Origin: Obrimoposthia wandeli
Taxonomy: Eukaryota
Reading direction: 5' to 3'
Assembly (NCBI GenBank): GCA_977020255.1
Contig: CDROCS010000253.1
Coordinates: forward strand, 620,001-684,000
DNA: 64,000 bases
Position numbers and translations under genes: made by a program. Positions 33,663-52,810 of this stretch are shown piece after piece (position 1 is the stretch's first letter; each line of letters begins with the position of its first letter). The notes beneath the pieces were generated by a model, which did not search any database, was not told the DNA's origin, and worked only from the letters and a program-made list of their open reading frames with translations.

Positions 33663-33722
33663 TATACCCGTTCCACTTGAAGATGCATGATTCAACTGGA
33701 AGTACAAACGCCTTTGGGGAAG
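33663..33722 (+). repeat. Truncated ERIC-like element (left end)
   Basis: TATACCCGTTCCACTTGAAGATGCATGATTCA identical to the start of the 54355 copy. Confidence 0.85.
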
Positions 33723-33762
33723 GCTGTAAAACCTCTCCCAAGCGCTTTTTTGCGTAGGCGTG

Positions 33763-34263: not shown

Positions 34264-34581
34264 TGTTATCCTTTTACTAACGAGCTTATAGAATATCTCG
34301 TTTTATTTTATAGTATTTATTAATCGTAACTCGCTAACTCAATTAAATTTTTACAGTACAATTAATTTCCTTATCTTTAATTATTTTATAAAAACAACTT
34401 AGTAGACTTGCTATTAAACAAGCTACAACCCAAATAGTTTCGGGGTAAGTTTCCATGACTAAAGAAGGATTTTAAACATCTTGTGAATTAACCACATAGC
34501 TTGAAATAAAATTATTTAACTGCCGAATTATAACGTTTGAAGGTAGTAAAACGACTATCGCTATTTAAAAAATAATAATAG

Positions 34582-34616
34582 AAAAGACCAACTTGAGCTT
34601 CAAGTTGGTCTTTTTT
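34582..34616. terminator. Strong intrinsic terminator at the end of the glutarate operon
   Basis: AAAAGACCAACTTGA-gct-TCAAGTTGGTCTTTTTT perfect stem immediately after the lhgO stop. Confidence 0.88.
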
Positions 34617-34617
34617 G

Positions 34618-35829
34618 TCATTTAGATGGCGTAGAACAAAAATGTTCACTTACTTTATCGACGATATAGCTACCAATGGGAATTGCTGAAGTAGCGGCTG
34701 GCGATGGCGCATTACAGACATTAATGGTTCGCTCGCTATTAGCAAACAAAAAGTCATGGACTAAGCTACCATCATTCATCACCGCTTGAGCACGAATACC
34801 TGCGGGATACGATTTAAGATCTGATAATTCAATCGATGGGCAATATTTTTGCACTAAGGTTAAATAGCCGTTTTTAAAGAGTGAATTTTTAAATTCAGTA
34901 ATACCAGAACGCAAGTTTTTCCACAGTACTTTCCAGAATCCAGCAAACATTATCATTTCTTTAATATCGCGAAAGTTAATATTAATCTTGCCATAACCTT
35001 CTCGCTTAAAACCCAAGACAGCATTAGGTCCAACGGTAACACTGCCATCAATCATTCGGGTTAAATGCACACCTAAAAAAGGTAATGTTGGATCAGGAAT
35101 AGGATATATCAAGTGATTAACAATGCCGTTTTTATTCGCCGGCAACTGATAATACTCACCACGAAATGGCACAATTTGAAAATCAACGTTAATGTTTAGC
35201 ATTTTGACCACACGATCAGCCATTAGACCCGAGCAAGTGATTAAGTAACGACTAGAAAATTCACCAGCAGTTGTACTAACGCAAACCTGCTCTGCTGTTT
35301 CCTTTAGCTGGGTTACTTTGGTATTTAATAGATATTCACCACCTAACGCTTGAAATTCCTGCGCCATTTTAATGGTAATTAGCTGGTAATCGACAATACC
35401 TGTAGATTTAACCAAAATAGCGCCAAGCCCGGTAATATTAGGTTCATGGACTTTAAGTTGCTCTTTATCTAATAAGTCCACTTCAATATTATTTTTTTGG
35501 CAGCGTTGGTAAAGCGCCGCCATACGCTTTACTTCTACTGTATTGGTGGCAACCAATAACTTACCGCATTGATTAAAAGGAATATTATGTTGCTGGCAAA
35601 AATTGATAGTGGCGTCGACACCTTCTCGACAAAACTTAGCCTTTAAGCTGCCAGGCTCATAATATACGCCAGCATGAATAACACCGCTATTATGTCCTGT
35701 TTGATGTAGCGCAAATTCACTTTCTTTTTCCAGCAAGAGTACTTTTTTATTGGGATAACGTTGTTGTAGCTGCCAAGCAGTCGATACACCAACAATACCA
35801 CCACCGATAATTATGTAGTCATAGATCAT
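34618..35829 (-). CDS. lhgO: L-2-hydroxyglutarate oxidase/dehydrogenase
   Basis: IIGGGIVG, HQTGHNSGVIHAGVYY, PFRGEYY, PFLGVHLT and NAPSPAAT motifs. Confidence 0.95.
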   Translation of the reverse strand: MIYDYIIIGGGIVGVSTAWQLQQRYPNKKVLLLEKESEFALHQTGHNSGVIHAGVYYEPGSLKAKFCREGVDATINFCQQHNIPFNQCGKLLVATNTVEVKRMAALYQRCQKNNIEVDLLDKEQLKVHEPNITGLGAILVKSTGIVDYQLITIKMAQEFQALGGEYLLNTKVTQLKETAEQVCVSTTAGEFSSRYLITCSGLMADRVVKMLNINVDFQIVPFRGEYYQLPANKNGIVNHLIYPIPDPTLPFLGVHLTRMIDGSVTVGPNAVLGFKREGYGKININFRDIKEMIMFAGFWKVLWKNLRSGITEFKNSLFKNGYLTLVQKYCPSIELSDLKSYPAGIRAQAVMNDGSLVHDFLFANSERTINVCNAPSPAATSAIPIGSYIVDKVSEHFCSTPSK

Positions 35830-35844
35830 AAAAACATCCTAGCT

Positions 35845-36807
35845 TTACGGTTTTAGTTTGGCATTTTCACAATAAGCACCGCGCTGACGCAACAATTCAC
35901 GATAGAGGCCTTTATCAGCAACAAATTTATCACGACCATGTAACCAGGCATGATTATTGACAACCAACATACTGCCGACAGGAACACGGACATTAAAAGT
36001 ATTTTGCTCCTCTTCTAATGACTTGCCCATTTCATATAAATACTGACCTTGGCGCATGTTTAAAGGTTCGGCAAATTGATCAATAAACAGCATTTTAGGT
36101 CGACCATTAATGTCTTCTTCAAAAAACACCGGATGTTGTATTTTATAAGTGATATTTTTACTCGCTGGCGAGGTCCATTGAATTTCTTCTTTTGCTAATG
36201 GATGATTATAGAATTTTTCTAAATCTTGCCATTCGTCTACATGTAATAACAAAGAGTCGCCGCCTTCCATATTCTCTTCAGCGATCTTTTGCATAATAAC
36301 CCAGTCAGTACGCTCTTTTACATAGGTGCCGTCATTGTGTAATTCCATACGACGATGGGCTTGACGTAAATAGCTATCACTATCATCGTCATTTTTGACA
36401 CTAAAGCGCGCATAAAATTTTCCATACATTGCATCTAAATTAGGTACACCAATTAAATGAGAAACGGCAGTTGATAATAGAATATTAAACTCAAGCTGAT
36501 CAAATTCAGCGACTACTGGTTCGCACTGCAGCATAAATGCACCCGTGCCTCTACTCTTGATAATGCCTAGCAGTAAGGTGCCTAAAGTATCATTAGTGAG
36601 ATTATTAAGAATACTAGCAACATGAAAACGCAAAAATGGTTTGTATTCTACCGCCTGCACGCCTAATGGTAATGCCTGTTCAATAAATCCTTTCACTGTT
36701 TCAGAGCTTAGCTTTATCACTTGTAAACGTGGATTTGCTGCAAATGGAGCTACCGAAAAGCCATGTGGGATTGATTCATCATTTATTTTTATTACTGAAC
36801 TATTCAT
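35845..36807 (-). CDS. glaH: Glutarate 2-hydroxylase (Fe/2-oxoglutarate dioxygenase, CsiD)
   Basis: MELHNDGTY (HxD), WLHGRD and LLRQRG motifs; adjacent to lhgO. Confidence 0.93.
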   Translation of the reverse strand: MNSSVIKINDESIPHGFSVAPFAANPRLQVIKLSSETVKGFIEQALPLGVQAVEYKPFLRFHVASILNNLTNDTLGTLLLGIIKSRGTGAFMLQCEPVVAEFDQLEFNILLSTAVSHLIGVPNLDAMYGKFYARFSVKNDDDSDSYLRQAHRRMELHNDGTYVKERTDWVIMQKIAEENMEGGDSLLLHVDEWQDLEKFYNHPLAKEEIQWTSPASKNITYKIQHPVFFEEDINGRPKMLFIDQFAEPLNMRQGQYLYEMGKSLEEEQNTFNVRVPVGSMLVVNNHAWLHGRDKFVADKGLYRELLRQRGAYCENAKLKP

Positions 36808-36832
36808 ATTATCACTCTCTTATGCTTTTAAT

Positions 36833-38047
36833 TTAACTTACCGTAGCGTTAGCAAATAGCTTACTAATGTTGTCTTCACTGTAATTGAGCGTTTTTGATA
36901 AAACCTGATGACTGTGCTGACCCAAGTCAGGTGAAGCACTGTTATATTGTAATGGTGTCGTCGACAGGTTGATTGGCGATGCTATTGTGTCAATAAGATC
37001 TCCATGTTGATTGGCTACTTGCCTGACCATTTCACGATGCTTGATCTGCGGATGATCAAAGACCTGCGCTAAGGTATTAACGGGGCCACAAGGCACAGCC
37101 ACACTTTCAAGTTGTTCAAGCCACCATTGACTGGTATGTGCAGCAAGTTTAGCGGCCAAAATAGGGATGAGTTTGTCGCGATTAATCACCCGTTGCTCGT
37201 TGGTAGCAAAACAAGGGTCTTGTGCAATATTCGACAGCTTAGCCACGTGACAAAATTTACTGAATTGGTTGTCATTACCTATGGCTAAAATCATGCTGCC
37301 ATCTTGAGTAGCAAACGTTTGATAAGGCACAATGTTGGGGTGTCCGTTACCTAATCGCTGCGGGTTTTTACCCGTGGCTAAATAGTTCATCCCTTGATTG
37401 GCTAATGTGGCTACCTGTACATCAAGCAGGGCAATATCAATATGTTGACCTTCGTTAGTCTGATGTCGAGCCATCAATGCTGCTAGCACCGCATTACAAC
37501 TGTACAAACCGGTCATGACATCAACAAGCGCAACGCCAACTTTCATTGGCATACCTTCAGCATCGCCCGTGATACTCATCAAGCCGCCTTCGCCTTGAAT
37601 CATGCCATCATAGCCAGCCTTATGTGCGCTTGGACCACTTTGCCCAAACCCGGTGATGGAGCAATAAACTAATCTAGGATTAATGGCTTTGACACTTTGA
37701 TAATCAAGACCATATTTAACCAAACCACCCACTTTATAATTTTCAATGAGGACATCAGCCTGAGCGATTAAGTCTTTAATCACTTGTTGACCTTGCTCTT
37801 GGGTAATATCAATAGCAATAGATTGTTTATTACGATTCACGCAATGAAAATATGCGGCTTGCGGTGGCTGTTCTTCTGTCGCTTCTTTTATAAAAGGAGG
37901 CCCCCAAAAGCGAGTATCATCACCTTTTTTAGGGCGCTCCACTTTTATCACTTCTGCGCCCATGTCAGCTAACATTTGCGAGGCCCAAGGCCCCGCTAAT
38001 ATGCGGCTTAAATCGACAACTTTTATGTTCCCTAATGCGCTAGTCAT
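36833..38047 (-). CDS. CaiB/BaiF family III CoA-transferase, probable succinyl-CoA:glutarate CoA-transferase
   Basis: DLSRILAGPW, GDDTRFWGPPF, NRNKQS and GNGHPNIVPYQ motifs; start overlaps the gcdH stop. Confidence 0.85.
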   Translation of the reverse strand: MTSALGNIKVVDLSRILAGPWASQMLADMGAEVIKVERPKKGDDTRFWGPPFIKEATEEQPPQAAYFHCVNRNKQSIAIDITQEQGQQVIKDLIAQADVLIENYKVGGLVKYGLDYQSVKAINPRLVYCSITGFGQSGPSAHKAGYDGMIQGEGGLMSITGDAEGMPMKVGVALVDVMTGLYSCNAVLAALMARHQTNEGQHIDIALLDVQVATLANQGMNYLATGKNPQRLGNGHPNIVPYQTFATQDGSMILAIGNDNQFSKFCHVAKLSNIAQDPCFATNEQRVINRDKLIPILAAKLAAHTSQWWLEQLESVAVPCGPVNTLAQVFDHPQIKHREMVRQVANQHGDLIDTIASPINLSTTPLQYNSASPDLGQHSHQVLSKTLNYSEDNISKLFANATVS

Positions 38048-39228
38048 TAGCAGAAAGCCTGATGACCGGTAATAGCACGACCCAAAATTAGCGCATGAAT
38101 ATCATGAGTACCTTCGTAAGTATTGACGGCTTCAAGATTCATCATATGGCGAATTACGCCAAATTCATCACTAATACCATTGCCACCATGCATATCACGG
38201 GCAACACGAGCAATATCAAGCGACTTGCCACAATTATTACGTTTTAATAAAGAAATCAATTCAACTGGACACTGATCCGCGTCCATTAAACGACCCATTT
38301 GTAAGCAGCCTTGCAAGCCAAGACTTATCTCCGTTTGCATATCAGCAAGTTTCTTTTGAATTAACTGATTAGCAGCCAAAGGGCGACCAAATTGTTCTCG
38401 ATCTAAGGTATAATTACGCGCAGAATTAAAGCAAAACTCTGCAGCCCCTAATGCCCCCCAAGCTATTCCATAACGCGCCTTGTTAAGACAACCAAAAGGT
38501 CCTGCTAATCCGCTAATTTCAGGGAACATATTTTCAGCTGGCACAAAAACGTTATCCATAACAATTTCGCCCGTTATTGAAGCACGTAACGAAAATTTAC
38601 CTTCAATTTTTGGTGCAGATAAACCTTCCATGCCTTTTTCAAGCACGAAACCACGAATTTTACGATCAAGCTTTGCCCAAACAACAAATACATCAGCTAT
38701 AGGTGAATTAGTGATCCACATTTTACTACCGGTTAAACAATAACCGCCATCAACTTTGGTGGCGTGAGTACTCATAGAGGCTGGATCGCTACCTGAGTTA
38801 GGCTCAGTCAAACCAAAACAGCCAACCCATTCACCCGAAGCAAGTTTAGGCAAATATTTCATGCGCTGCTCTTCAGTGCCGTAAGCATAGATAGGATGCA
38901 TAACCAGTGACGATTGCACACTCATGGCGCTGCGATAGCCACTATCGACACGCTCTACTTCCCGAGCGATCAAACCATAACTGACATAATTAATTTCACT
39001 GCCACCATATTGAGCAGGCAAGGTAGCACCCAATAGACCTAATTGACCTAATTCACGCATTATTTCACGGTCAAAGTGTTCGTGTCTATTGGCTTCAAGT
39101 ACACGTGGCAGAAGCTTTTCTTGGCAATAATCATAAGCTGTATCACGTATCATACGCTCTTCTTCAGTGAGTTGATTATCAAGAAACATTGGATCTTGCC
39201 AGTTAAAGGCAGTTAATTTTTGGCTCAT
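38047..39228 (-). CDS. gcdH: Glutaryl-CoA dehydrogenase
   Basis: FNWQDP...[35 protein letters not shown] and [13 protein letters not shown] motifs. Confidence 0.95.
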
Positions 39229-39338
39229 ATGATTAGTCCGTTTATATCCTGTTGTGTAGAGATGAAAAGGGTTTAATTTATTGCTTTACTCTATCCTTAA
39301 AACATAAATAAATATAATATATAGTTTTTATAGTTTTC

Positions 39339-39353
39339 ATAACTTTTACTTAT
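39339..39353. promoter_or_regulatory. LysR-type T-N11-A site in the gcdH / regulator divergent region
   Basis: ATAA-CTTTTAC-TTAT dyad just upstream of the LysR start. Confidence 0.5.
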
Positions 39354-39366
39354 AAGGTGCGCGACG

Positions 39367-40248
39367 ATGAACTTAAAACGTCTTGAATATTTTTGTCAAT
39401 TAGCCATGCTGGGCAACTTTACTCGGGCAGCACATAAAATAGGTATTGCTCAACCAGCGCTAACGATTGCTATGCAAAAGCTAGAACAAGAAGTAGGACT
39501 AAAGTTAATTAATCGTGCTGAAAAAAATTCCTTGTTAACCGCTGAAGGTGAAGTTCTCTATAAACTGGCAACCCAACTATTAAGCCAAGCAAAACAGGTT
39601 GAATTAGAATTAGAAGAACTAAAAGATCTAGAGCAAGGTACTATTCGTTTTGGTGTTTCCGCTATGATGGGCTCTTATTACTTCCCGAAAGTATTAACGG
39701 AATTCAAACAACAGCATCCAAAAATAAAAATGCACTTAGTTGACCAAGGCACAGCGGCACTGGAGAAAATGTTACTCAATGGCGAACTTGATTTAGCCTT
39801 GGTACGCAGTGATTTAGAAAATCCACAACTGCGTTACACTGAGCTATTTAATGAGGAAGTGGTTGCGGGCATGGTCAGTTCACATCCGCTAGCCGCAGAG
39901 AAAACACTATCATTGGCACAATTTTGCCAAGAACCGCTGGTGTTATTTCATGAAGGTTATTTTTTACGTGAAGTTGTTAGCCAATATGCAAAAAAACATC
40001 ACTTAGCCTTAGATATCCGTATGGAAACTAATCTTGTTGAACTGCAAAAATCATTGGTTCGCAATGAGGTGGGTATTACCACGTGTCTATCACGTATTTT
40101 ACAAAACGAACAACAGATGACATCAATACCCTTTGAGCCAAAAATTGAATTTAAGCTGAGTTTGGCATGGAAAAAAAGTCATTACTTGTCTAAAGCCAGT
40201 AAAGCTTTCATGACTTACTTAAGCTCAACGCTTGATCCTATGGATTAA
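39367..40248 (+). CDS. LysR-family regulator divergent from gcdH (GcdR-like position)
   Basis: GNFTRAAHKIGIAQPALT...LEQEVG..L..R helix-turn-helix. Confidence 0.9.
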   Translation: MNLKRLEYFCQLAMLGNFTRAAHKIGIAQPALTIAMQKLEQEVGLKLINRAEKNSLLTAEGEVLYKLATQLLSQAKQVELELEELKDLEQGTIRFGVSAMMGSYYFPKVLTEFKQQHPKIKMHLVDQGTAALEKMLLNGELDLALVRSDLENPQLRYTELFNEEVVAGMVSSHPLAAEKTLSLAQFCQEPLVLFHEGYFLREVVSQYAKKHHLALDIRMETNLVELQKSLVRNEVGITTCLSRILQNEQQMTSIPFEPKIEFKLSLAWKKSHYLSKASKAFMTYLSSTLDPMD

Positions 40249-40664
40249 CTTCAATCAATTACCTCTGTGGATCTTCAAATAAAGTGAGAATTCTTGTGCA
40301 ATATTTTTCTGGGTTGTAACTAGTTAGGGATAAATTAAACGAAGCTTTTGCGTCAAAATTCGAAAGGAAATTACAGAATAATTCACAAATCGCTAGAATA
40401 TAATGGCGACTAAGTAGCTTAGTTGACGGTAGAGTTAGTTTCGCTAAGGACAATTGACCGACATTGCGGTCATTCATTGTTAAACTGGTAACGCTCACTT
40501 TGGCGCATAGGAGATATTAGCGTGAATTTTCTTAGCTATATATTTTCTAATGCTTATTTCTATCAATAGGGCTTAAATACAAGAAGAATAGTTACCTATA
40601 ACATGAGTATAAATTTAGTTCGTGTAACACAACCAAAAAAGCAGATATTACATTTAGAAGCTAG

Positions 40665-41234
40665 TTAGTTCTTTATAGGGACTTCTGGTGGGGAAGAATT
40701 GAAAGTTTTCAGCATAGCAGTCGCGCTTTCAGGAGAAATTTGTTTACTGCGCTCTTGTTCTTTAAGCTTTTGGGTAAATTCTTTGCCTATTTCTAATGTC
40801 ATCAAAACTTTATCGGCTATCTGTTGTTCAAGTACCGATACTGCTTGTTCTTTTTCGTCTTCGTTGAGTATTGTTGACTGCTTTATTTTCGATACTTCTG
40901 CCTTCAGCATCTTTATTTCCTCATCAACCCTGTCCTTTACCTCTTTCATTTTTCTATAATCAACAGGGAGATCGTTTACCTTTTCCTGATATTCTTGTTT
41001 GGCTATTTCATATTCTTTTGTCTTCTGCTCATAAGTCTTATCGCTTTCGGCTTTATCAATATTTTGCAATGCTAATGCTTTAGAGGATAAAATAACTTTT
41101 GTCTCCCCACTTTCTACGACATGTGGTTGAGCAGTTGAGACATTCGCTTTAACATCATTGTGATTATCGATAGAGGCATGCAAACCTTTACCTAAATTTT
41201 TATTCAGATGAAGTTGAGCAGCATAAATTTCCAT
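40665..41234 (-). CDS. Hypothetical coiled-coil protein
   Basis: Long K/E/Q-rich helical ORF; start moved to ATG 41234; no family recognised. Confidence 0.7.
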   Translation of the reverse strand: MEIYAAQLHLNKNLGKGLHASIDNHNDVKANVSTAQPHVVESGETKVILSSKALALQNIDKAESDKTYEQKTKEYEIAKQEYQEKVNDLPVDYRKMKEVKDRVDEEIKMLKAEVSKIKQSTILNEDEKEQAVSVLEQQIADKVLMTLEIGKEFTQKLKEQERSKQISPESATAMLKTFNSSPPEVPIKN

Positions 41235-41765
41235 TACAAAGTTCCATTTTGAAGTTATTAAATATCTCCAACCTACACCACGTTCAGGGTTAGTCAATTA
41301 ATATTGTCTATATAGCATCATATTTAGGTAATACGGACTTAGTGGTCACATTTTATACGCGTAAGTATCCGTTATCGATAAATAATCTAATCCGAAACGA
41401 CTTTAAAGCTCATCAGCTAATGTCCGCAATGCGGCTGTAGTTAGCGTTTCAAAATGACTTACCACTGACGGCTTTGAGCTTAAACCTGCCTAATAAGCTA
41501 GCAGCGAATTTCGATTAATATTACCCTAAATATGACCATGGTTTCACAAAATCCTAATGACCACCTGAACTAAAGCCTCATTGTTGCCGTTACGGACGAC
41601 AGATCTAATGTCAACAAATAGGTGAATAGGTTAACTTCAAAGATTGGGGCAGTCGAAAAAACGTAACAAGTTGTTAAATTTTATTATGGCGCAACGCATT
41701 GATCATTATTTACGATGGTCCACACCTCTCAACAGCAGACAACGATAAATTCGAAAGCCACAAAT

Positions 41766-41831: not shown

Positions 41832-43187
41832 TTAAATAAGGTTATAAAACCTAGCGGTATCATCTAGGGTCTTTTTAGCTTTCTCTATTAACTCATCAAT
41901 TTCGGCTTTTGTAATAACCAACGGCGGTGCAATAACCATAATGTCGCCACATGGACGCATAATTAAACCATTCGCCATTGAATAATCACGACAAACACCA
42001 CCACCAGCTGAATTAGGTGCTAAGCGTTCTTTAGTTGTTTTATCTTTAACAAGTTCAATCGCTGCAACCATGCCTAAACCACGCGCTTCACCTACAATGG
42101 GGTGGTCAGCAAGCTCTTGCCAGCGTTTCTGTAAATAAGGTGAAACTTCACTTTTAACTTGCTCAACAATCCCCTCAGATTCTAAAATCTCGATATTTTT
42201 TAGCGCAACAGCCGCTGCTACCGGATGACCAGAATAAGTGTAACCATGGTTAAAATCACCACCTTTTCCGATAACCACATCAGCAACTTTATCTGAAATA
42301 ATAACGCCGCCAATAGGCAAGTAACCTGAAGACATACCTTTGGCAATAGTAATCATGTCAGGTTTTAAATCAAAATATTCACAAGCAAACCAATCGCCAG
42401 TACGGCCAAAGCCTGAAATAACTTCATCTAAAATAAATAGAATATCGTACTTGGCTAGAATTCTTTTAATTTCAGGCCAGTAGCTATCTGGAGGTATTAT
42501 CACCCCGCCAGCACCTTGGAAAGGTTCTGCAATAAAAGCGGCAACGTTCTCTTCACCTATCTCTAATATTTTAGCTTCCAACGATTGAGCGGCTTTAATG
42601 CCAAATTCATCTTTAGATAAATCGCCACCTTCAGCAAACCAATAAGGTTGGTCAACATGTTCAATACCCTCAATAGGTAAGTCACCTTGCTCATGCATAT
42701 AACCCATACCACCTAGACTTGCCGCAGCAACGGTGGATCCATGATAAGCATTTTTACGACTAATAAAGGTTTTCTTCGTTGGCTGCCCTTTTAAGTCCCA
42801 ATATCTACGCACCATTCTAAAGTTTGTATCGTTCGCATCAGAGCCTGAACCAGTAAAAAACACTTTATTCATATGTGGAGGAGCAAGTGAAGCTATCTTT
42901 GCTGCCAAGTTAGTTGCAGGCGCTGTGGTTGTTTTAAAAAACAAGTTGTAATAAGGCAGTTCTGCCATTTGTTGACTCGCTGCTTCAATCAGTTCTTTGC
43001 GACCATAACCAATGTTTACACACCACAAACCCGCCATGCCATCGAGGTATTTTTTACCATTATCTTCATAAATATAAACACCTTCAGCTTTAGATATTAA
43101 TTTAATACCTTTCTCTGCAAGCTCTTTATTATCACTAAATGGTTGAAAGTGATGGGCGGTGTTTTTCTGCTGAAATTCTGATTTCAT
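41832..43187 (-). CDS. spuC: Putrescine:pyruvate-type class III aminotransferase (SpuC-like)
   Basis: [40 protein letters not shown] and [10 protein letters not shown] motifs; polyamine context. Confidence 0.85.
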
Positions 43188-43261
43188 AACGTAACCTTTT
43201 TAGTTTTATTATAAATTACCCACTTTAATAAAGTGGTCTGTTTAAAACGGGTATATACCCG

Positions 43262-44548
43262 TTATTTAACAAGCGCTTTGAACATATTTTCAAAGACATC
43301 TAAGCCTTCTGCTAGTACTTCATCTGTCATGGTTAATGGCGGTAAGAAACGAATTACATTACCGTAAAAACCACACGCCAGTAAGACCAAACCATACTTG
43401 GCCGCGTTAGCGATAATAGCTTGAGTTAATTCAGTGTTTGGTTGCTCAGCATCACCGTTTTGAACTAATTCCATCGCAATCATTGAACCTTGATTACGCA
43501 CATCCAAAATTAAATCTGGGAATGCTTCTTGTAATTGGCTTAAGCGCTGATTAAATTGCTCGCCAATGTATACTGAACGTGCAATTAAATTTTCTTCTTT
43601 GATTATGTCTAAAACCGCTAATGCTGCAGCACAAGCCACGGGTGAACCACCATAAGTGCCGCCCAAACCGCCTGGTAAAGGTGCATCCATTACTTCACTT
43701 TTACCCACAACGGCAGCAATAGGGAAACCACCAGCAATACCTTTTGCCATGGTCATTAAATCAGCTTCGACCCCTGAATATTCAAAGGCAAACATTTTTC
43801 CTGTACGACCAAAGCCCGTTTGGATCTCATCTGCAATTAACATAATGCCATGTTGATCACAGAGTTTACGTAAGGCTTGCAAAAACTCAGTAGGTGCAGC
43901 ATAAAAACCACCCTCACCTTGTACAGGTTCAACAATAATGGCGGCTACATCGCTCGGTGCGATATCGACTTTAAATAAATTTTCAAGGGCTTTTAAAGAT
44001 TGCTTAACCGTAATGTCGTGACATTCAATTGGGAATGGGGCATGAAAAATATCGCCAGGAAATGGACCAAATAAATTTTTGTATGGTGTAATTTTTCCTG
44101 TTAGCGCCATTGTTAAGTTGGTGCGTCCGTGAAAGCCACCATTAAAGGCAATAACACCACGACGACCAGTATAAGCACGAGCAATTTTCACACAGTTTTC
44201 AACGGCTTCAGCACCTGTTGAAACAAATATTGCTTTTTTCTCAGAATCACCAGGGGCAATGTCGATTAGTTTTTCAGCTAATTCAACAGCAACTTCATAA
44301 GGGTTAACCATCACACAAGTATGACTAAATTTATCTAACTGTGCTTTTGCAGCAGCGACAACTTTTGGGTGGCTGTGGCCAGTATTACAAACTGCAATAC
44401 CCGCACCAAAGTCGATATAGCGATTACCTTCTACATCCCATATTTCGGAGTTTTCTGCGCGCTCTACATACACTGGATACATATTGCCTTGGCCACGCGC
44501 GATAACTTTAGTCTTTCTGCTTTGTAACTCTTGATTTGATGTTGTCAT
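43262..44548 (-). CDS. gabT: 4-aminobutyrate/5-aminovalerate aminotransferase
   Basis: DFGAGIAV, TGAEAVENCVKIAR, EPVQGEGGF and MAKGIAGGFP motifs. Confidence 0.92.
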   Translation of the reverse strand: MTTSNQELQSRKTKVIARGQGNMYPVYVERAENSEIWDVEGNRYIDFGAGIAVCNTGHSHPKVVAAAKAQLDKFSHTCVMVNPYEVAVELAEKLIDIAPGDSEKKAIFVSTGAEAVENCVKIARAYTGRRGVIAFNGGFHGRTNLTMALTGKITPYKNLFGPFPGDIFHAPFPIECHDITVKQSLKALENLFKVDIAPSDVAAIIVEPVQGEGGFYAAPTEFLQALRKLCDQHGIMLIADEIQTGFGRTGKMFAFEYSGVEADLMTMAKGIAGGFPIAAVVGKSEVMDAPLPGGLGGTYGGSPVACAAALAVLDIIKEENLIARSVYIGEQFNQRLSQLQEAFPDLILDVRNQGSMIAMELVQNGDAEQPNTELTQAIIANAAKYGLVLLACGFYGNVIRFLPPLTMTDEVLAEGLDVFENMFKALVK

Positions 44549-44579
44549 TGTATTGTCTCTAAATTCTATTTTTTAATTA

Positions 44580-44841
44580 ATACCAATTCTATTAAATTTA
44601 TTCCTAACTCAGAGCTATATTAGCGAGCTTAGAAAAAAAACTTGTTAAACATAGTTATTCTATATTTCATTGGTTTTGTGAAGTTATCAGTTTGCTAATA
44701 AGCTCCCGAAGGGTGAGTTTAAAAGGCTAATATACTGCGTTATTGATTTCGACAAGGGAATAACCATTATCTTCAATCAATGCCTTGCCTCTAAGCCTTT
44801 TAATTCTCACTGAGTCGGAAATAACTTAATAGATTTGGTAT
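44580..44841. mobile_element. 262-bp ATACCAA-family MITE between gabD and gabT
   Basis: Terminal inverted repeat ATACCAATTCTATTAA / TTAATAGATTTGGTAT (15/16); contains the 55-bp core shared with the ERIC-like copies. Confidence 0.85.
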
Positions 44842-44929
44842 CTACAGTGGCAGAGCTATCATTTTTTATAACGCTGCCGACATAATATAAATTTGCTTAA
44901 ACTTACCTAAACGAAATTATTTATCCAAA

Positions 44930-46414
44930 CTACTTATCTAAGCCACCCATACATAGGTATTTAATTTCTAAGTAATCGTCTAAGCCATATTTTGAACCTT
45001 CTCGGCCGTTACCCGATTGCTTAACACCACCAAATGGAGCGGCGGCGTTAGAAATAATACCTTCATTAATACCAACCATGCCGAACTCAAGGCCTTCAGC
45101 TACTCGCCAAACCGTACCAATATCACGTGAGTAGAAATACGCCGCTAAGCCGTATTCTGTATCGTTAGCAAGTTCAATAGCTTCTTCTTCTGTTTCAAAG
45201 GCAATAATAGGAGATACCGGACCAAAAATTTCATTGGCTGCAATTGGCATATCATTAGTAACGCCAGTTAGAATAGTTGGCTGATAGAACAGCTCTCCTG
45301 CTGCTGCACGCTGTCCGCCTGATACTATTTTTGCACCTGCGGCAACAGAATCAGCAACCAGTTTTTCAACATCACAAACTGCTTTGTCTGAAATCATTGG
45401 ACCAAGGTTGACGCCCTCTGCTAAACCATCACCAATGCGTAACTCAGCCACTGCATTTTTGAATTTTTCAGTAAATTCTGCTAATACGCCTTGTTGAACT
45501 AAAATACGATTGGTACATACACAGGTTTGACCTGCATTACGGTATTTAGAAATAATGGCACCTTGTACCGCAGCGTCAATGTCGGCATCGTTAAAGACAA
45601 TAAATGGTGCATTACCACCTAATTCCATTGATACTTTTTTTACCGTTGTTGCACATTGAGTCAATAATAATTTACCAACGCCAGTCGAACCGGTGAAAGT
45701 GAATTTTGCCACATCAGGGTGTTGCGTTAATACTTTACCCATACCTCTAGAATTACTACCAACAACAACATTAAATACGCCAGCAGGAATGCCTGCTCGC
45801 TCTGCTAGTTCAGCCATCGCTAATGCCGATAACGGCGTTGATTCAGACGGTCTAACAACAAAGGTACAACCTGCAGCTAATGCCGCGGCAGCTTTACGGG
45901 CAATCATCGCATTGGGGAAATTCCATGGGGTAATAGACGCGACCACACCAACCGGTTGTTTAATGACAATAATTTTTTTATCACTCGAAAGCGCAGGAAT
46001 AGTATCGCCATAAACGCGTTTACCTTCTTCAGCAAACCATTCTAAAAATGCCGCACCGTAGGCAATTTCACCTTTAGCTTCAGCCAACGGTTTGCCTTGT
46101 TCTAACGTTAGGATACGCCCTAAGTCATCTTGATTTTCCATCACTAAATTAAACCAATTACGTAATAACGTTGCACGTTCATTAGCTGATTTAGCTGACC
46201 ACATTTTTAAGGCGCCTTTGGCAGCAGACACCGCCAATTCAGTTTCTGCCACGTCAGCATTACTCACCTGAGCAACAACTTCGCCAGTCGCTGGGTTGGT
46301 AACTGAAAATTGAGTTTCACTGCTATGCCAACTGCCGTTAATATAAGAAAACGGTTTTATAAGCTGGCTGTCTTTTATGCCCGCAGCTGCTAGATCACAG
46401 GTAAATTTAGTCAT
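44930..46414 (-). CDS. gabD: NAD(P)+ succinate/glutarate-semialdehyde dehydrogenase
   Basis: ITPWNFPNAMIARK, FTGSTGVGK, MELGGNAP, KYRNAGQTCVC and EIFGP motifs. Confidence 0.93.
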   Translation of the reverse strand: MTKFTCDLAAAGIKDSQLIKPFSYINGSWHSSETQFSVTNPATGEVVAQVSNADVAETELAVSAAKGALKMWSAKSANERATLLRNWFNLVMENQDDLGRILTLEQGKPLAEAKGEIAYGAAFLEWFAEEGKRVYGDTIPALSSDKKIIVIKQPVGVVASITPWNFPNAMIARKAAAALAAGCTFVVRPSESTPLSALAMAELAERAGIPAGVFNVVVGSNSRGMGKVLTQHPDVAKFTFTGSTGVGKLLLTQCATTVKKVSMELGGNAPFIVFNDADIDAAVQGAIISKYRNAGQTCVCTNRILVQQGVLAEFTEKFKNAVAELRIGDGLAEGVNLGPMISDKAVCDVEKLVADSVAAGAKIVSGGQRAAAGELFYQPTILTGVTNDMPIAANEIFGPVSPIIAFETEEEAIELANDTEYGLAAYFYSRDIGTVWRVAEGLEFGMVGINEGIISNAAAPFGGVKQSGNGREGSKYGLDDYLEIKYLCMGGLDK

Positions 46415-46519
46415 GGTTTTATCTCAATAGTTATTTAATAAACAATATCTGTATTGAAACCTAGTTTTAAATCAGGTTAAATACAAAACAATAAACCTTT
46501 AGTTTTAAGTAGACCAAAC

Positions 46520-47443
46520 ATGTATAAGCATTCAATCATCCCTAAGCCTGTTAATGAATATGATTTACGTTTGCTACGTATTTTCATTTCGGTAGTTGAA
46601 CATGGCGGCTTTTCATCTGCCGCTAATGCACTAGGTATAACGCGCTCAACCATTAGTGTGCATATGTCTAATTTAGAAACTCGCATGAAATTAAAGTTGT
46701 GTTTACGTGGTCGAGGGGGGTTTTCGTTAACTGAAGATGGTCAAGCCGTCTATCAAGCCGTACTCGACTTGTTTGCTACCATGGATGGTTTTTCTTTATT
46801 AATTAATAGCTTAAGTAGTGAGTTAAGTGGTGAACTAGTTATTTTGTGTGCGGATATACTTGATGAAAACAAACAGCATAAAATGGCGCAAGTGATTAAA
46901 AAAATTAATGATATTTCACCTAATTTACACATAGTGCTAGATGGAGACTCTATCTCAAATATAGAGAAGTCTTTGTTAAAAGATAAAGCCCATATCGGTT
47001 TGTTTCCAAGTTATCAGCAAATAGAGGGGCTAAAGTACCAACCTTTATTTAGCGAACCCATTTATTTATGTTGTGGCAAGCAGCATCCCTTTTTTAATCA
47101 AGTCGACACTGCTATATCTGAAGAAAAATTAGGGGAAGCCCCTGCTATACACCCCGGTATTAATATAGATTTAGCTGGTAAACAACAATTAAAAAAACTT
47201 AACTTATCAGCAAAGTCCTATCAATTTGATACCCGTAAAGCGATGATTTTATCTGGCTGCTACATAGGTTATATGCAACAGAGCTTTATTCAAGCAGAAC
47301 TCAACCGTGGCGAGATTAGAATAATAAAGCCCAACAGCCATTATTATCAATTTAGATTATCTTTAGTAAGTAAGAAAACCCCCAGAGAAGTAAAAAAAGT
47401 TGAGTTACTAACGAGTGTGTTTTCTCAAGTATTTGAGTTATAA
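46520..47443 (+). CDS. LysR-family regulator, BauR-like, divergent from gabD
   Basis: LRLLRIF..VVEHGGFSSAANALGITRSTISVHMSNLETR...CLRGRGGFSLTEDG. Confidence 0.88.
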   Translation: MYKHSIIPKPVNEYDLRLLRIFISVVEHGGFSSAANALGITRSTISVHMSNLETRMKLKLCLRGRGGFSLTEDGQAVYQAVLDLFATMDGFSLLINSLSSELSGELVILCADILDENKQHKMAQVIKKINDISPNLHIVLDGDSISNIEKSLLKDKAHIGLFPSYQQIEGLKYQPLFSEPIYLCCGKQHPFFNQVDTAISEEKLGEAPAIHPGINIDLAGKQQLKKLNLSAKSYQFDTRKAMILSGCYIGYMQQSFIQAELNRGEIRIIKPNSHYYQFRLSLVSKKTPREVKKVELLTSVFSQVFEL

Positions 47444-47450
47444 AACTGTT

Positions 47451-47552
47451 TATACCCGCTCCACTTGAAGATGCAGGATTCAGCTGGAATTATAAACGCC
47501 TTTAGGCAAGGTATTGATTGAAGAGAATAGTTATTCAGGAGAATATGCTCCT
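47451..47552 (+). repeat. Truncated ERIC-like element with inverted internal segment
   Basis: First 86 nt match 54355-54440; the sequence then continues as the reverse complement of 54571-54586. Confidence 0.85.
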
Positions 47553-47888: not shown

Positions 47889-49313
47889 ATGTTTATGAAA
47901 AATTTACGCCACTTTTATATTAATGGACAATGGGTATCGCCAGAAAAACCGCAGGACTTTATCGTTGAAAATCCTTCAAATGAAAGTCAAATTGGCATTA
48001 TTTCTCTAGGCACTAGTGTCGATGTTGATAAAGCCGTTATTGCCGCTAGAAACGCCTTTAATCATTATGGCTTTAGCTCAAGAGAAGAGCGTATTGCCTT
48101 ATTAGAAAAGTTATTAAGTGCCTATATGAATCGTTACGATGAAATGGCACAGGCAATTTCTCAAGAAATGGGCGCGCCAATCGATTTTGCCACAGCTGCT
48201 CAAGCTGATTGTGGCCGAGGTCATATTCAAACAGCGTTAGATGCTTTAAAAACTTATGAATTTGAGCACATCTCAGCCAATGCCACTATAAGCCATGAGC
48301 CGATAGGCGTTTGTGGATTCATTACGCCTTGGAACTGGCCTATTAATCAAATTGTTTGCAAAGTTGCACCGGCATTAGCCACAGGTTGCACCATGATTTT
48401 AAAGCCCAGTGAAATTGCCCCTTTATCAGCCCATGTGTTTGCCAAAATAATTGATGATGCGGGTTATCCCGCAGGTGTTTTTAATATGGTTAACGGTGAT
48501 GGCATGGGCGTAGGCGCTGCGATATCGTCTCACGAAGATATTGATATGGTCTCTTTTACTGGCTCAACTAGAGCGGGCTCGTTAATTTCAAAATCTGCGG
48601 CAGATACCGTAAAACGAGTCTCCTTAGAATTAGGTGGTAAATCACCAAACATTATATTTGATGATGTAGACCTAGAAACTATCGTGACCAAAGGTGTTAT
48701 CGGCTGTATGGAAAATACTGGCCAATCATGTAATGCACCCACACGTATGCTAGTGCAAGAGTCGGTTTATGATGAGGCAGTGAAAATAGCGACTCGCGTT
48801 GCTAATGGTATAAAAGTCGATGGTGCTGATAAGCCAGGTGATCATATTGGGCCATTAGTTAGCCAAGCTCACTTTGATAAAGTACAAGGTATGATCAAAG
48901 AAGCCATTGAATCTGGCGCTACCTTAGCTGCAGGTGGACTCGGCAAACCAGAAGGGTTTGAAGTGGGTCATTTCACCAAACCGACGATATTTTCCAATGT
49001 GAACAATAAAATGAACATTGCTCAAGAGGAAGTATTTGGTCCTGTTCTGGTAATAATTCCTTTCAAAGATGAACAAGAAGCAATTACTTTAGCAAACGAT
49101 TCCCCTTATGGTTTAGCGGCCTATATTAATACCCCTGATGAAGAAAAAGCGAGTCGTGTCGCAAGGAAAATAAGGGCTGGAATGGTACGAATTAACTGGG
49201 CTTCACATTATTACACCTCCCCGTTTGGTGGCTATAAACAATCAGGAAACGGTCGTGAGTGGGGTACCTATGGCTTTGATGATTATTTAGAAATTAAAGC
49301 CACCAGCCGTTAG
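47889..49313 (+). CDS. Aldehyde dehydrogenase (CddD/SSP0762-like subfamily)
   Basis: ITPWNWPINQIVCKVAPALATGC, FTGS, LELGGKSP, NTGQSCNAP and EEVFGP motifs. Confidence 0.9.
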   Translation: MFMKNLRHFYINGQWVSPEKPQDFIVENPSNESQIGIISLGTSVDVDKAVIAARNAFNHYGFSSREERIALLEKLLSAYMNRYDEMAQAISQEMGAPIDFATAAQADCGRGHIQTALDALKTYEFEHISANATISHEPIGVCGFITPWNWPINQIVCKVAPALATGCTMILKPSEIAPLSAHVFAKIIDDAGYPAGVFNMVNGDGMGVGAAISSHEDIDMVSFTGSTRAGSLISKSAADTVKRVSLELGGKSPNIIFDDVDLETIVTKGVIGCMENTGQSCNAPTRMLVQESVYDEAVKIATRVANGIKVDGADKPGDHIGPLVSQAHFDKVQGMIKEAIESGATLAAGGLGKPEGFEVGHFTKPTIFSNVNNKMNIAQEEVFGPVLVIIPFKDEQEAITLANDSPYGLAAYINTPDEEKASRVARKIRAGMVRINWASHYYTSPFGGYKQSGNGREWGTYGFDDYLEIKATSR

Positions 49314-49493
49314 TCTGTGAAATTTTAATTATATTTACTTGAGGTTTTAATTTCAGCTAAAAGGGTATTGATTTATTTACTTGACTATGTTTTTATAAGT
49401 AAGGATTGAAGAATATATTTAACAATACAATGTCATTCTGAGTTTTAAAAGAGCTTTATTAAGTAAATAACAAACAAAAACAGGGTATGAACT

Positions 49494-50579
49494 ATGAAAA
49501 AGAAAAGTATATTACTAATAGCAACAATGCTTGCTTCAATGGCCGCATCTGCATCAGATAAAGTGGTTAACGTTTATAACTGGTCAGATTATATCGACCC
49601 AGCCTCGATTAAACAATTTGAAAAAGAAACCGGCATCAAAGTTAACTACGATGTTTATGATTCTAATGAAATCCTAGAAGCCAAACTGATGGCTGGTGGT
49701 TCAGGTTATGATGTTGTCGTACCGACAGGTTCATTTTTAGAACGACAAGCAAAAGCGGGTATTTACGCACAAATTGATAAAAGCAGCCTTTCCAATTACG
49801 GTAACATTGATAAAACAATGGCAAGTAAAATGGCGCTTCATGATCCAGGTAATAAACACGGTATACCTTACACATGGGGAACGATTGGATTAGGTGTTAA
49901 TCCAGACATGGTTAAAGCACGCTTAGGTGATGTGGAACTTAATAGTTTAGATTTAATCTTTAAGCCTGAAGTCGCAGCAAAACTAGCTGATTGTGGTATT
50001 GGTATTTTAGACTCCCCTGCTGAAGTTATGGCTATCGCATTAAACTACGAAGGTTTAGATCCTAATTCAGAAAGCGTTAAAGATCTTAAAGCGACACAAG
50101 CGATGATTAAAAAGGCCCGCCCTCATTATAAATACTTTGACTCGAGCCGCCTGATTTCTGATTTAGCCAATGGCGATATTTGTGTCGCGTTAGGTTATAA
50201 CGGCGACATGTTACAAGCGAATAGTCGTGCAAGTGAAGCTGGACAAGGTATTAAAGTTGAATACTTAATTCCTAAAGAAGGTACCATTGCTTGGTTCGAT
50301 ATGATGGCAATTCCTGCCGATGCGCCTCATAAAAAAGAAGCCTATGCCTTTATCAACTACATCTTAAAAGCTGAAACTGCCGCAGGTATTTCTAACTATG
50401 TTTATTATGCTGTCGCCAATGAAGCTGCTGCTGAATTTGTTAACGAAGACATCAAATCTAATATCGGTATTTACCCCGTTGGAGAAACAAAAGAAAAACT
50501 GTTTTCTCAACTCGCTCATACTTCTCGTTTCGACCGTAAATTAACACGTGCTTGGACAATGATTAAAACAGGTAGATAG
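49494..50579 (+). CDS. potF: Putrescine/polyamine ABC transporter binding protein (PotF/SpuD)
   Basis: VYNWSDYI, DSNEILEAKL, YTWGTIG, LANGDICVALGYNGD and IPKEG...WFD motifs. Confidence 0.92.
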   Translation: MKKKSILLIATMLASMAASASDKVVNVYNWSDYIDPASIKQFEKETGIKVNYDVYDSNEILEAKLMAGGSGYDVVVPTGSFLERQAKAGIYAQIDKSSLSNYGNIDKTMASKMALHDPGNKHGIPYTWGTIGLGVNPDMVKARLGDVELNSLDLIFKPEVAAKLADCGIGILDSPAEVMAIALNYEGLDPNSESVKDLKATQAMIKKARPHYKYFDSSRLISDLANGDICVALGYNGDMLQANSRASEAGQGIKVEYLIPKEGTIAWFDMMAIPADAPHKKEAYAFINYILKAETAAGISNYVYYAVANEAAAEFVNEDIKSNIGIYPVGETKEKLFSQLAHTSRFDRKLTRAWTMIKTGR

Positions 50580-50606
50580 TTTTAATCAGTGAAAGTAAGG
50601 GCATTA

Positions 50607-50651
50607 ATACCAATCAAACTACCTGATCTATTTAAATGGCCTGATTGGTAT
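50607..50651. repeat. 45-bp ATACCAA-family mini-element between potF and potG
   Basis: Perfect 10-bp terminal inverted repeat ATACCAATCA / TGATTGGTAT. Confidence 0.75.
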
Positions 50652-50729
50652 AACTTGCTCTTATTCTTTAGAAAATAACTACAATAACAAACATCTAAAT
50701 CCTGTCGAAAATATCCCTAGGAATACCGA

Positions 50730-51860
50730 ATGACTCAAGAAACAACTATGCCTCTTTGGAAACAAGATGGCGCAAAACCTTTTATTCAAATAAAAAACGT
50801 GACTAAAAAATTCGGTGAATTTACCGCTGTAGATAATGTTTCGTTAGATATTTATGAAAATGAATTATTTTGTTTATTAGGAGGTTCTGGATCAGGAAAA
50901 AGTACCCTGTTAAGGATATTGGCTGGCTTTGAAGACCTCACTTCTGGTCAGGTACTTATCGATGGCGTCGATATGGCTAATATTGAGCCGTGGAATCGTC
51001 CGATAAATATGATGTTTCAGTCATACGCATTATTTCCTCATATGACCGTCGCTAAAAACATTGCTTTTGGCTTAAAGCGTGACAAGGTACCTAAAAAAGA
51101 AATTGAAAAACGTGTTGCAGAAATGCTGAGCATGATGCAAATAGAAGCGTTTGCTGATAGAAAACCCGACCAATTATCAGGCGGACAGCGTCAACGTGTC
51201 GCGTTAGCTAGAGCACTAATAAAGCGCCCGAAACTGCTTTTACTTGATGAGCCTTTAGGTGCACTAGATAAAAAGCTGAGAGAAGAAACTCAATTTGAAT
51301 TAGTCAATATTCAAGATAAGTTAGGGGTTACCTTTGTTGTCGTAACGCATGACCAAGAAGAAGCCATGACACTTGCCACCCGAATTGGCGTAATGGGTAA
51401 TGGTATTATTACCCAAGTTGATGAGCCCCGTGATGTTTATGAATACCCAAGCAGTCGTTTTGTTGCAGAATTTGTTGGCTCTATTAATTTATTCGAGGGC
51501 CGTATTTATGAAGATGACGTTGAACATGTAAAAATAAAATCAAAAGAAGCTGGCTGTAACTTTTTTGTAAATCATGGCCTCAGCTGTGCACCTAATCAAA
51601 AAGTGACCGTTGCTGTTCGTCCTGAAAAAATGAAAGTCACCCGTAGTAAACCCGAGCTTGAATATAACTGTTTACATGGTCAAATTATCGATATTGCTTA
51701 TATGGGTAACCTTTCAATCTTTAGAGTTAAACTAAAGAGTGGCGTAATCGTTCGTGTCACTTTGCCTAATCTTGTCAGAGAAAATCGTAATCCATTAACC
51801 TGGGATGATTTTGTTTACCTTTCTTGGGATTACGACAGCAGCGTGGTATTAACATCATGA
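50730..51860 (+). CDS. potG: Polyamine ABC transporter ATPase (PotG/SpuF)
   Basis: GGSGSGKST, LSGGQRQRVALAR, LLDEPLGALD and THDQEEAM motifs. Confidence 0.92.
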   Translation: MTQETTMPLWKQDGAKPFIQIKNVTKKFGEFTAVDNVSLDIYENELFCLLGGSGSGKSTLLRILAGFEDLTSGQVLIDGVDMANIEPWNRPINMMFQSYALFPHMTVAKNIAFGLKRDKVPKKEIEKRVAEMLSMMQIEAFADRKPDQLSGGQRQRVALARALIKRPKLLLLDEPLGALDKKLREETQFELVNIQDKLGVTFVVVTHDQEEAMTLATRIGVMGNGIITQVDEPRDVYEYPSSRFVAEFVGSINLFEGRIYEDDVEHVKIKSKEAGCNFFVNHGLSCAPNQKVTVAVRPEKMKVTRSKPELEYNCLHGQIIDIAYMGNLSIFRVKLKSGVIVRVTLPNLVRENRNPLTWDDFVYLSWDYDSSVVLTS

Positions 51861-52810
51861 GTAAAGTAACTGGTACCTTTTGGCTAGGTCGTTATGACAC
51901 AGTCAAAACCCAATTTAGTTCATTAAAAAAAATCCGCTGGGGTAGATACTCTGTTATCTCTATCCCTTCACTGTGGCTAGCCTTATTTTTCTTTATTCCT
52001 TTTTTGGTCGTGTTTAAAATTTCATTGGCTGAATCGGCTATTGCCGTACCTCCTTATACCGACATGTTTGGCTGGAATGTAGAAGAGGCAATGCTTGATG
52101 TAAAAATAAAGTTTGGCAATTACTTATACCTTTTTGAAGACTCCTTTTATGTGGATGCTTATTTAAGTTCAGTTAAGATCGCTGCTGTCTCTACTTTTTT
52201 TACCTTAATAATTGGCTTTCCTATGGCCTATTTTATTGCCAGTAAATCAGGCTCTACACGGACGCTATTATTAACGCTTGTTATCTTACCTTTTTGGACT
52301 TCATTTTTATTAAGAGTCTATGCGTGGATGGGCTTTCTTAAAAAGAACGGTATTGTGAATGAGTTTTTACAAGGTATTGGCCTTATTGATCACCCTATTC
52401 AAATGTTGCAAACCGACTTTGCCGTTTATATTGGTATTGTCTACACCTATTTACCTTTTATGATTTTACCTTTGTACACCACCTTAGAAAAATTAGATGC
52501 TAGCTTAATTGAAGCATCTAAAGATCTAGGTGCAGGGCCAATTAGAACCTTTTTCTTGATTACTTTGCCCATGTCTATGCCGGGAATTTTAGCCGGTTGT
52601 TTATTAGTATTTATACCTGCCGTTGGCGAATTTGTTATTCCAGCATTACTTGGTGCGTCAGATACCTTAATGATTGGACGAGTACTTTGGGATGAATTTT
52701 TCCAAAATAGAGATTGGCCAATGGCTTCAGCTGTGGCGACCATGATGTTACTTATTTTAGTTGTTCCTATCATGTTTTTACGTAACGGCAAAAAAGAAGG
52801 AACAGAATAA
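51857..52810 (+). CDS. potH: Polyamine ABC transporter permease (PotH/SpuG)
   Basis: LPFWTSFLLRVYAW and EASKDLGA motifs; ATGA overlap with potG. Confidence 0.92.
   Translation: MSKVTGTFWLGRYDTVKTQFSSLKKIRWGRYSVISIPSLWLALFFFIPFLVVFKISLAESAIAVPPYTDMFGWNVEEAMLDVKIKFGNYLYLFEDSFYVDAYLSSVKIAAVSTFFTLIIGFPMAYFIASKSGSTRTLLLTLVILPFWTSFLLRVYAWMGFLKKNGIVNEFLQGIGLIDHPIQMLQTDFAVYIGIVYTYLPFMILPLYTTLEKLDASLIEASKDLGAGPIRTFFLITLPMSMPGILAGCLLVFIPAVGEFVIPALLGASDTLMIGRVLWDEFFQNRDWPMASAVATMMLLILVVPIMFLRNGKKEGTE

Follow-up and report, generated by a model that had tools for sequence, protein, structure and literature searches.

A Colwellia gene cluster with predicted genes for both glutarate degradation routes beside one divergent LysR-type regulator, and its deletion derivatives in the Colwelliaceae

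In the literature, csiD-lhgO (under CsiR) and gcdH-gcoT (under GcdR), which serve the two routes of glutarate degradation, are described as separate units (PMC6667623, PMC5974017, PMC6265302, PMC8206213, PMC12622518, bioRxiv 10.1101/557751). In Pseudomonas putida, the sole organism in which both have been studied, GcdR and CsiR regulate the two routes independently and without cross-regulation, which has been ascribed to independent evolution (PMC6667623). CsiD, LhgO and GcdH were found together in 26 of 4929 genomes, 25 of them Pseudomonas (PMC5974017). Here we analyse a stretch of 64,000 nucleotides, called the window, from contig CDROCS010000253.1 (C253; positions 620,001 to 684,000) of an Obrimoposthia wandeli assembly, in which gcdH, a gcoT-like CoA-transferase gene, glaH (csiD) and lhgO follow one another on one strand, with a single LysR-type regulator gene divergent from them (Table 1). 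The contig, part of a mixed assembly of 1.35 Gb and 6912 contigs, is bacterial and comes from a Colwellia, a cold-water marine bacterium; its GlaH is 94% identical to proteins of Colwellia psychrerythraea and C. demingiae.

Two groups of described loci come closest to this arrangement. The gcdR-gcdH-gcoT (gcdHG) locus of P. putida and P. aeruginosa likewise has a divergent LysR gene, then gcdH, then a family III CoA-transferase gene, and also a T-N11-A box in the divergent region. The window differs from it in having a non-orthologous regulator, in its operator half-sites (ATAA/TTAT instead of GTGA/TCAC), and in the presence of glaH-lhgO after gcoT in the same predicted unit. The csiD(glaH)-lhgO operons of Escherichia coli and P. 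putida share with the window the adjacency and order of the GlaH and LhgO genes and, in the case of E. coli, the nearby gabD and gabT. Unlike the E. coli operon, which reads glaH-lhgD-gabDTP-glaR in the K-12 record, and unlike csiR-csiD-lhgO of P. putida, the window has its glaH in an internal position behind gcdH-gcoT, with a regulator of the LysR type. An initial annotation of this DNA had described the E. coli arrangement correctly, and its statement that P. putida keeps the two routes at separate loci, under GcdR and CsiR, agrees with PMC6667623. It had also suggested that co-induction of the two routes without a GntR-type CsiR is not known to have been described. We found no report of such a fused operon, or of a LysR-controlled glaH-lhgO, in a full-text literature search that left subscription journals mostly outside its reach. 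Every enzyme here belongs to a known kind, and the system as a whole is therefore not of a new kind; what is new is the wiring, the lineage of the regulator and the series of deletions.

We think it likely that gcdH-gcoT-glaH-lhgO is one Colwellia operon for both glutarate routes, served by one LysR-activated promoter with glutarate as the effector and without a CsiR, and that it represents an older fused state in which deletions later occurred in relatives. In the CoA route, the family III CoA-transferase would activate glutarate and GcdH would make crotonyl-CoA from the resulting glutaryl-CoA. In the hydroxylation route, the Fe(II)/2-oxoglutarate dioxygenase GlaH would make L-2-hydroxyglutarate (L-2-HG), which LhgO would oxidise to 2-oxoglutarate. 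All four genes would be read from a single promoter, located in the 138-bp divergent region, as far as the terminator behind lhgO, and gcdH and gcoT would probably be translationally coupled. The divergent LysR protein would bind a T-N11-A box and activate this promoter, with glutarate as its probable effector. A deletion in the C. psychrerythraea group would have left the same regulator and promoter driving glaH-lhgO, and other lineages would have lost gcoT alone or, probably, glaH-lhgO. We infer the single transcript, the activation by LysR and the effector from sequence, and the gene order together with the comparative data suggests that the two routes would be co-induced.

Table 1. Positions in the window of the glutarate locus, its parts and the neighbouring genes
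Feature	Position	Strand	Basis or remark
Predicted intrinsic terminator, 15-pair stem and T-run	34582-34614	-	Consensus scan and direct reading
lhgO, L-2-hydroxyglutarate oxidase/dehydrogenase (FAD oxidoreductase), 403 aa	34618-35829	-	NCBIfam equivalog
glaH (csiD), glutarate 2-hydroxylase, 320 aa	35845-36807	-	NCBIfam equivalog
Family III CoA-transferase, GcoT-like (putative succinyl-CoA:glutarate), 404 aa	36833-38047	-	PF02515, synteny
Last 53 nt of the CoA-transferase gene	36834-36886	-	Relic of this segment survives in relatives without gcdH and the CoA-transferase gene
gcdH, glutaryl-CoA dehydrogenase, 393 aa	38047-39228	-	Open reading frame list and sequence reading
Divergent control region, AT-rich, 138 bp	39229-39366	-	Between the LysR and gcdH starts
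LysR-type regulator gene (293 aa), transcribed divergently from gcdH	39367-40248	+	Pfam HTH_1 and LysR_substrate
Neighbouring supply genes, outside the operon	41832-47443	-	NCBIfam matches
SpuC-like aminotransferase	41832-43187	-	NCBIfam
gabT	43262-44548	-	NCBIfam
gabD	44930-46414	-	NCBIfam
Second LysR	46520-47443	+	NCBIfam
Aldehyde dehydrogenase, then potFGHI	47889-53613		NCBIfam

The loci that we compared came from species genomes, metagenomes and encoding contigs. Within the Colwelliaceae they fall into four layouts, and an orthologous LysR gene (84-94% identity) is found in the first three. Layout A has LysR divergent from gcdH and the CoA-transferase gene only (L050 and L051-L056); in L050 the LysR, GcdH and CoA-transferase are 94%, 96% and 91% identical to those of the window. 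Layout B is the fused one, with LysR divergent from gcdH, the CoA-transferase gene, glaH and lhgO. It occurs in the window, in Cognaticolwellia sediminilitoris (L013), in a complete Cognaticolwellia genome of 4.66 Mb (L043) and in two metagenome contigs, L092 and the partial TARA contig L095. The CoA-transferase gene and glaH are 25 bp apart in the window; the corresponding spacer of the remaining fused loci is 40-53 bp long. Layout C, LysR divergent from glaH-lhgO, is that of the C. psychrerythraea/demingiae group, of contig C2253 and of C. chukchiensis. Layout D, gcdH-glaH-lhgO with an internally deleted CoA-transferase gene, was seen in metagenome contigs (L093, L094 and L096), where about 70 bp of the LysR gene remain and an open reading frame of 369 aa stands in its place. 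The gcdH-CoA-transferase-csiD-lhgO order given in the initial annotation is real; it is not unique, as it recurs in the Colwelliaceae.

Outside this family, neither gcdH nor a CoA-transferase gene stood beside glaH in any of the GlaH loci examined, which included those of SUP05/Thioglobus, Endozoicomonas, Photobacterium, PS1, Bermanella, Dasania and Oceanospirillaceae. CsiD itself has a patchy distribution, being present in 7 of 55 species of the GTDB genus of C. demingiae, in 3 of 22 species of that of C. sediminilitoris, in 7 of 401 members of a family sample and in 2 of 401 members of a sample of the class Gammaproteobacteria, the reference genome included. With one CsiD genome besides the reference, the class sample gives no estimate of how often gcdH and glaH are linked.

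Also close to the window are the C-type loci of the C. psychrerythraea/demingiae group. These have an orthologous LysR (89-92% identical), GlaH and LhgO that are 90-94% identical, the same control region, and matching gabD-gabT-aminotransferase genes in the flank. Unlike them, the window has gcdH and gcoT between the promoter and glaH and lacks a second type of CoA-transferase/gcdH pair. In the C-type genomes this second pair encodes proteins 54% (CoA-transferase) and 75% (GcdH) identical to those of the window, is in reversed order, and lies about 7 kb from the glaH locus, between the second LysR gene and the aldehyde dehydrogenase gene. In the loci where we inspected it (L045, L049, L085 and L037), the pair is convergent with the second LysR gene, and a regulator dedicated to the pair was not obvious. 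No remains of it were found at the corresponding place in the window, which is occupied by an 86-bp repeat. The same assembly contains a second Colwellia contig, C2253 (L003 and L037), which at this locus hardly differs from C. demingiae and carries the unfused LysR and glaH-lhgO arrangement together with a second-type pair. From the layouts of C253 and C2253, two Colwellia with different glutarate wiring co-occur in one sample. Three further contigs of the assembly, C6770, C3817 and C3917 (L001, L002 and L004), hold csiD-lhgO pairs of other bacteria, with 58-59% and 68-69% identity.

The direction of change can be read from a relic. Four C-type loci (L007, L009, L003 and L012) carry, between the conserved promoter block and glaH, a stretch that aligns with the terminal 37-53 nt of gcoT in the window; in strain ND2E (L012) this match extends as far as the gcoT stop codon. 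The local alignment scores were 21-27, against 7.7 ± 1.4 and a maximum of 14 in 500 shuffles, and one left breakpoint is common to all four loci. Because a relic of the gcoT 3' end is present and the left breakpoint is shared, the comparison indicates that the C-type layout of the C. psychrerythraea group derives from the fused operon by deletion, and that this happened once. The predicted deletion of about 2.4 kb would begin approximately at the transcription start and stop 53 nt short of the gcoT end, with the loss of gcdH and most of gcoT. In a tree of GlaH and LhgO, all nine C-type Colwellia together form the sister group of the window (support 100/98) and the other fused loci branch outside; this topology fits an older fused state that was kept in the window lineage. 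The fused operon is apparently the ancestral layout in the Colwelliaceae.

The remaining layouts are related to the fused one in other ways. In the D-type loci, the fused arrangement has lost about 1 kb from within gcoT. The A-type locus L054 has the whole genomic context of the fused locus L043; it keeps the spacer that precedes glaH, followed by a GAGTAA repeat. A hairpin with the stem core GACCAACTT...AAGTTGGTC follows lhgO in the window and in L043, and follows the CoA-transferase gene in L054. These features suggest, less firmly than the relic does for the C-type loci, that L054 has lost glaH-lhgO.

The regulator gene, which had been reported as the only divergent LysR gene here, is present as such and has HTH_1 and LysR_substrate domains. 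NCBIfam and PDB searches gave it no name beyond the family, and a search of protein names returned only "LysR family". We considered whether it is an orthologue of GcdR and rejected this, as BLASTP gave 26% identity over 172 aa to the Pseudomonas GcdR orthologue P0121 and the operators differ. In the P. putida GcdR operator, GTGACAAAATATCAC, the half-sites are GTGA and TCAC (GTGA-N7-TCAC; PMC6667623). The Pseudomonas locus L074 has a GTG-N9-CAC box, and the half-sites in the window are ATAA-N7-TTAT. All-against-all BLASTP separated two clades, one of GcdR proteins (Pseudomonas P0121, P0136 and P0137; 212-330 bits among themselves) and one that includes the window LysR with P0153, P0154, P0156 and P0157 (208-333 bits), with 42-64 bits between the clades. 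The window LysR is thus assigned by sequence to a clade separate from Pseudomonas GcdR, and would take the role of GcdR by position with a different LysR ancestry. The locus L074 was recognised by its cluster names and its pntAA neighbour. The 90%-identity cluster of the Pseudomonas GcdR orthologue also contains many 373-aa entries for the transhydrogenase PntAA; adjacent genes were apparently merged during clustering, and names drawn from this cluster need care.

The clade of the window LysR is narrow. A phmmer search of 1.84 billion representatives gave one match at 54% identity (340 bits), the next being at 35-41% (200-234 bits). In all six lineages that we checked (38-54% identity), the LysR gene stands divergently beside gcdH and a CoA-transferase gene or beside glaH-lhgO. 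The Photobacterium ganghwense LysR (52%) and P0154 (54%) face glaH-lhgO, the Granulosicoccaceae LysR P0153 (49%) faces gcdH, P0157 (41%) faces gcdH-CoA-transferase-thiolase, and P0156 (38%) faces gcdH and a CoA-transferase gene. A shared operator box was not obvious by eye in the divergent regions of the Photobacterium (L023) and Granulosicoccaceae (L059) loci.

Several searches support the earlier claim that no GntR-type CsiR is involved. The open reading frame list and profile searches revealed no GntR-type CsiR/GlaR gene at the locus, and no GlaR orthologue was found in five related Colwellia and Cognaticolwellia genomes, two of the fused type and three of the C type. In these five genomes the E. 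coli GlaR query, taken from the K-12 record, retrieved only generic GntR/FadR matches (24-27% identity, at most 48 bits) far from glaH. The CsiR consensus motif (bioRxiv 10.1101/557751) occurs at chance frequency in the window, with no occurrence in the control region.

The control region of the window contains the T-N11-A box ATAAGTAAAAGTTAT at 39339-39353, at the place that the initial annotation had singled out for regulator binding and, with no mismatches allowed, as a single copy in the window. The box lies within a conserved block, 39282-39366. The LysR-proximal 95 bp or so are almost invariant in 8 of 8 aligned loci, irrespective of whether the first gene is gcdH or glaH, and hold ATAAGTAAAAGTTAT, a second AT-rich stretch resembling T-N11-A, and GATAGAGTAAA. 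With the candidate hexamer TAGAGT (39288-39293) as the -10 element, the box would be centred near -65 and the second site would lie at about -45 to -27, and such spacing would correspond to the classical layout of a LysR-activated promoter. A consensus scan gave an alternative pair of promoter hexamers at 39340-39311. The final 25 bp or so before the glaH start, including the ribosome-binding site, are common to the spacer in front of glaH in the window and to the C-type loci.

A number of points weigh against the interpretation of the locus as one LysR-activated, glutarate-responsive and ancestral operon. The promoter elements are AT-rich and ambiguous, and the sequence may be compatible with an internal promoter inside the 3' coding region of gcoT. 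The effector could be L-2-HG, glutaryl-CoA or an upstream amine. The CoA-transferase scored 515 bits on the succinate--glutarate model of NCBIfam, for which the cut-off is 750. As to the history, the direction from the fused layout to layout A comes from one comparison, and the C. chukchiensis clade showed no gcoT relic.

One alternative keeps the single operon and changes its control: the LysR protein could sense L-2-HG, glutaryl-CoA or 5-aminovalerate, or could act as a repressor. The effector of GcdR cannot be transferred to it by homology, since the two proteins are not orthologous, and P. putida CsiR is responsive to glutarate as well as to L-2-HG (PMC6667623). Against this, the LysR proteins of the clade adjoin gcdH and a CoA-transferase gene alone or glaH-lhgO alone, depending on the taxon, and L-2-HG and glutaryl-CoA are each confined to one route. 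Glutarate is the most economical choice because it is the sole metabolite common to both routes. We therefore regard control of these other kinds as doubtful, and glutarate as the probable effector.

The locus could also consist of two tandem units, a LysR-controlled gcdH-gcoT and a glaH-lhgO read mainly from its own promoter in the 3' end of gcoT, in which case the two routes would not be strictly co-induced. The sporadic distribution of glaH-lhgO suggests that these two genes arrived as a cassette, possibly with a promoter, and weak promoter-like hexamers occur throughout this AT-rich sequence. The anatomy of the locus points the other way. The gcdH stop and the start of the CoA-transferase gene share 1 bp (TAATG at 38047-38049), and glaH and lhgO are separated by 15 bp. 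The spacer in front of glaH is short in the window and in the other fused loci alike, and no hairpin was found in it. In a consensus scan of 34300-40400, the hairpin at 34614-34582, directly 3' of the lhgO stop, was the sole strong terminator-like site; the remaining minus-strand matches had stems of 5-10 pairs and poor T tails, and such sites numbered 8 in total, compared with 5.3 ± 2.3 expected from shuffles. Promoter-like hexamer pairs numbered 18 in the same region and 18.3 ± 4.1 in shuffles; as the matches are at the chance level, no internal promoter stands out. These results agree with the initial annotation, which had named one strong terminator at the end of the operon and no internal hairpin; its coordinates, strand and spacings also proved exact on checking against the open reading frame list and the sequence. 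In addition, the C-type deletion brought glaH to a distance of about 100 bp or less from the LysR-dependent promoter, and since only 37-53 nt of gcoT were kept, little of any internal promoter could survive there. Two separate units are in our view unlikely.

The single operon would serve one glutarate route only if the dehydrogenase and the CoA-transferase acted on another acyl-CoA or dicarboxylate. This is allowed for by the transferase's failure to reach the curated cut-off. However, succinate--glutarate CoA-transferase is its top NCBIfam model, ahead by more than 220 bits, and it scores 443 bits on PF02515 and 330 bits with human SUGCT. GcdH scores 635 bits with the Burkholderia pseudomallei glutaryl-CoA dehydrogenase (3D6B) and 610 with the human enzyme (1SIQ), whereas no chain from outside the group of glutaryl-CoA dehydrogenases exceeds 227 bits. 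The gene order is that of Pseudomonas gcdH-gcoT, and the proteins are 75% (GcdH) and 59% (CoA-transferase) identical to their counterparts at L074. From this synteny and the 59% identity to the Pseudomonas GcoT homologue we infer that the CoA-transferase substrate is glutarate, and consider another substrate quite improbable. The enzymes of the hydroxylation route scored well above their NCBIfam equivalog cut-offs, with 472 bits against 333 for GlaH and 622 against 299 for LhgO. GlaH also scored 421 bits on the Pfam CsiD model, is 49% identical to E. coli GlaH, and aligns with it at the HxD and distal H/R metal-binding motifs. Profile, structure-chain and homologue matches thus agree with the four enzyme identities given earlier.

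It is hardly credible that the fusion arose by mis-assembly, or as a rearrangement both very recent and private to one strain: although the mixed assembly also contains a second Colwellia with an unfused layout, contigs from two studies cross the junctions (one of 2307 bp from a run of a different study, covering 34872-37177 with 11 differences and spanning the junction of the CoA-transferase gene with glaH, and one of 3416 bp, covering 36676-40091), the same gene order is found in four other genomes or contigs, and relatives carry the deletion relic. The fused layout is real and not an assembly artefact, which is excluded by the contigs of two studies.

The surroundings of the operon contain genes that could bear on its substrate. 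In E. coli, GabT and GabD turn 5-aminovalerate into glutarate (PMC6265302). By analogy, the neighbourhood listed in Table 1 could feed cadaverine or 5-aminovalerate into glutarate, which supports the proposed substrate and is not proof of it. The G+C content is 0.42-0.45 across gcdH and the CoA-transferase gene (36500-38500 of the window), compared with 0.35-0.39 in glaH-lhgO and the flanks; the raised value may stem from strong conservation of the proteins or from a different history. The LysR stop and the SpuC-like aminotransferase gene are separated by a segment of about 1.48 kb (40249-41731) that is missing from all of the related loci compared. This segment holds an open reading frame of 210 aa (40665-41297, with a TTG start) that has no Pfam or NCBIfam match.

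A repeat of about 86 bp is found in intergenic positions and in both orientations in this Colwellia and its relatives, with copies 84-97% identical. In the window it occurs at 47451-47536, 54355-54440, 18945-19012, 33663-33723 and 44758-44806, and it is also present in L045 and L049. One copy lies exactly where the C-type relatives hold the second-type CoA-transferase/gcdH pair, and another is within the spacer between LysR and glaH in L045. The repeat looks like an element of the miniature inverted-repeat transposable element (MITE) or repetitive extragenic palindromic (REP) type.

We propose that this locus is a natural alternative to the arrangement of P. putida, with both routes placed on one promoter and one sensor. 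Its close relatives represent a series of deletions that removed either the one route or the other under the same control region, and the locus would document how a regulator can be handed over between pathways through deletion. It offers a candidate glutarate-responsive pair of LysR and promoter for biosensors, and a clean system in which to ask why an O2/2-oxoglutarate-dependent route and a CoA-dependent route should be run together. We lean, with some reserve, towards a broader view in which this LysR clade forms a third family of glutarate-sensing transcription factors, which evolved independently, has no relationship with GcdR or the GntR-type CsiR, and controls whichever glutarate route is present in marine Gammaproteobacteria. 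On this view, the fused operon of the Colwelliaceae would represent an ancestral hub; the lineages derived from it would have retained one of the two routes (CoA or O2-dependent) or both through alternative deletions, with the regulator and its promoter unchanged.

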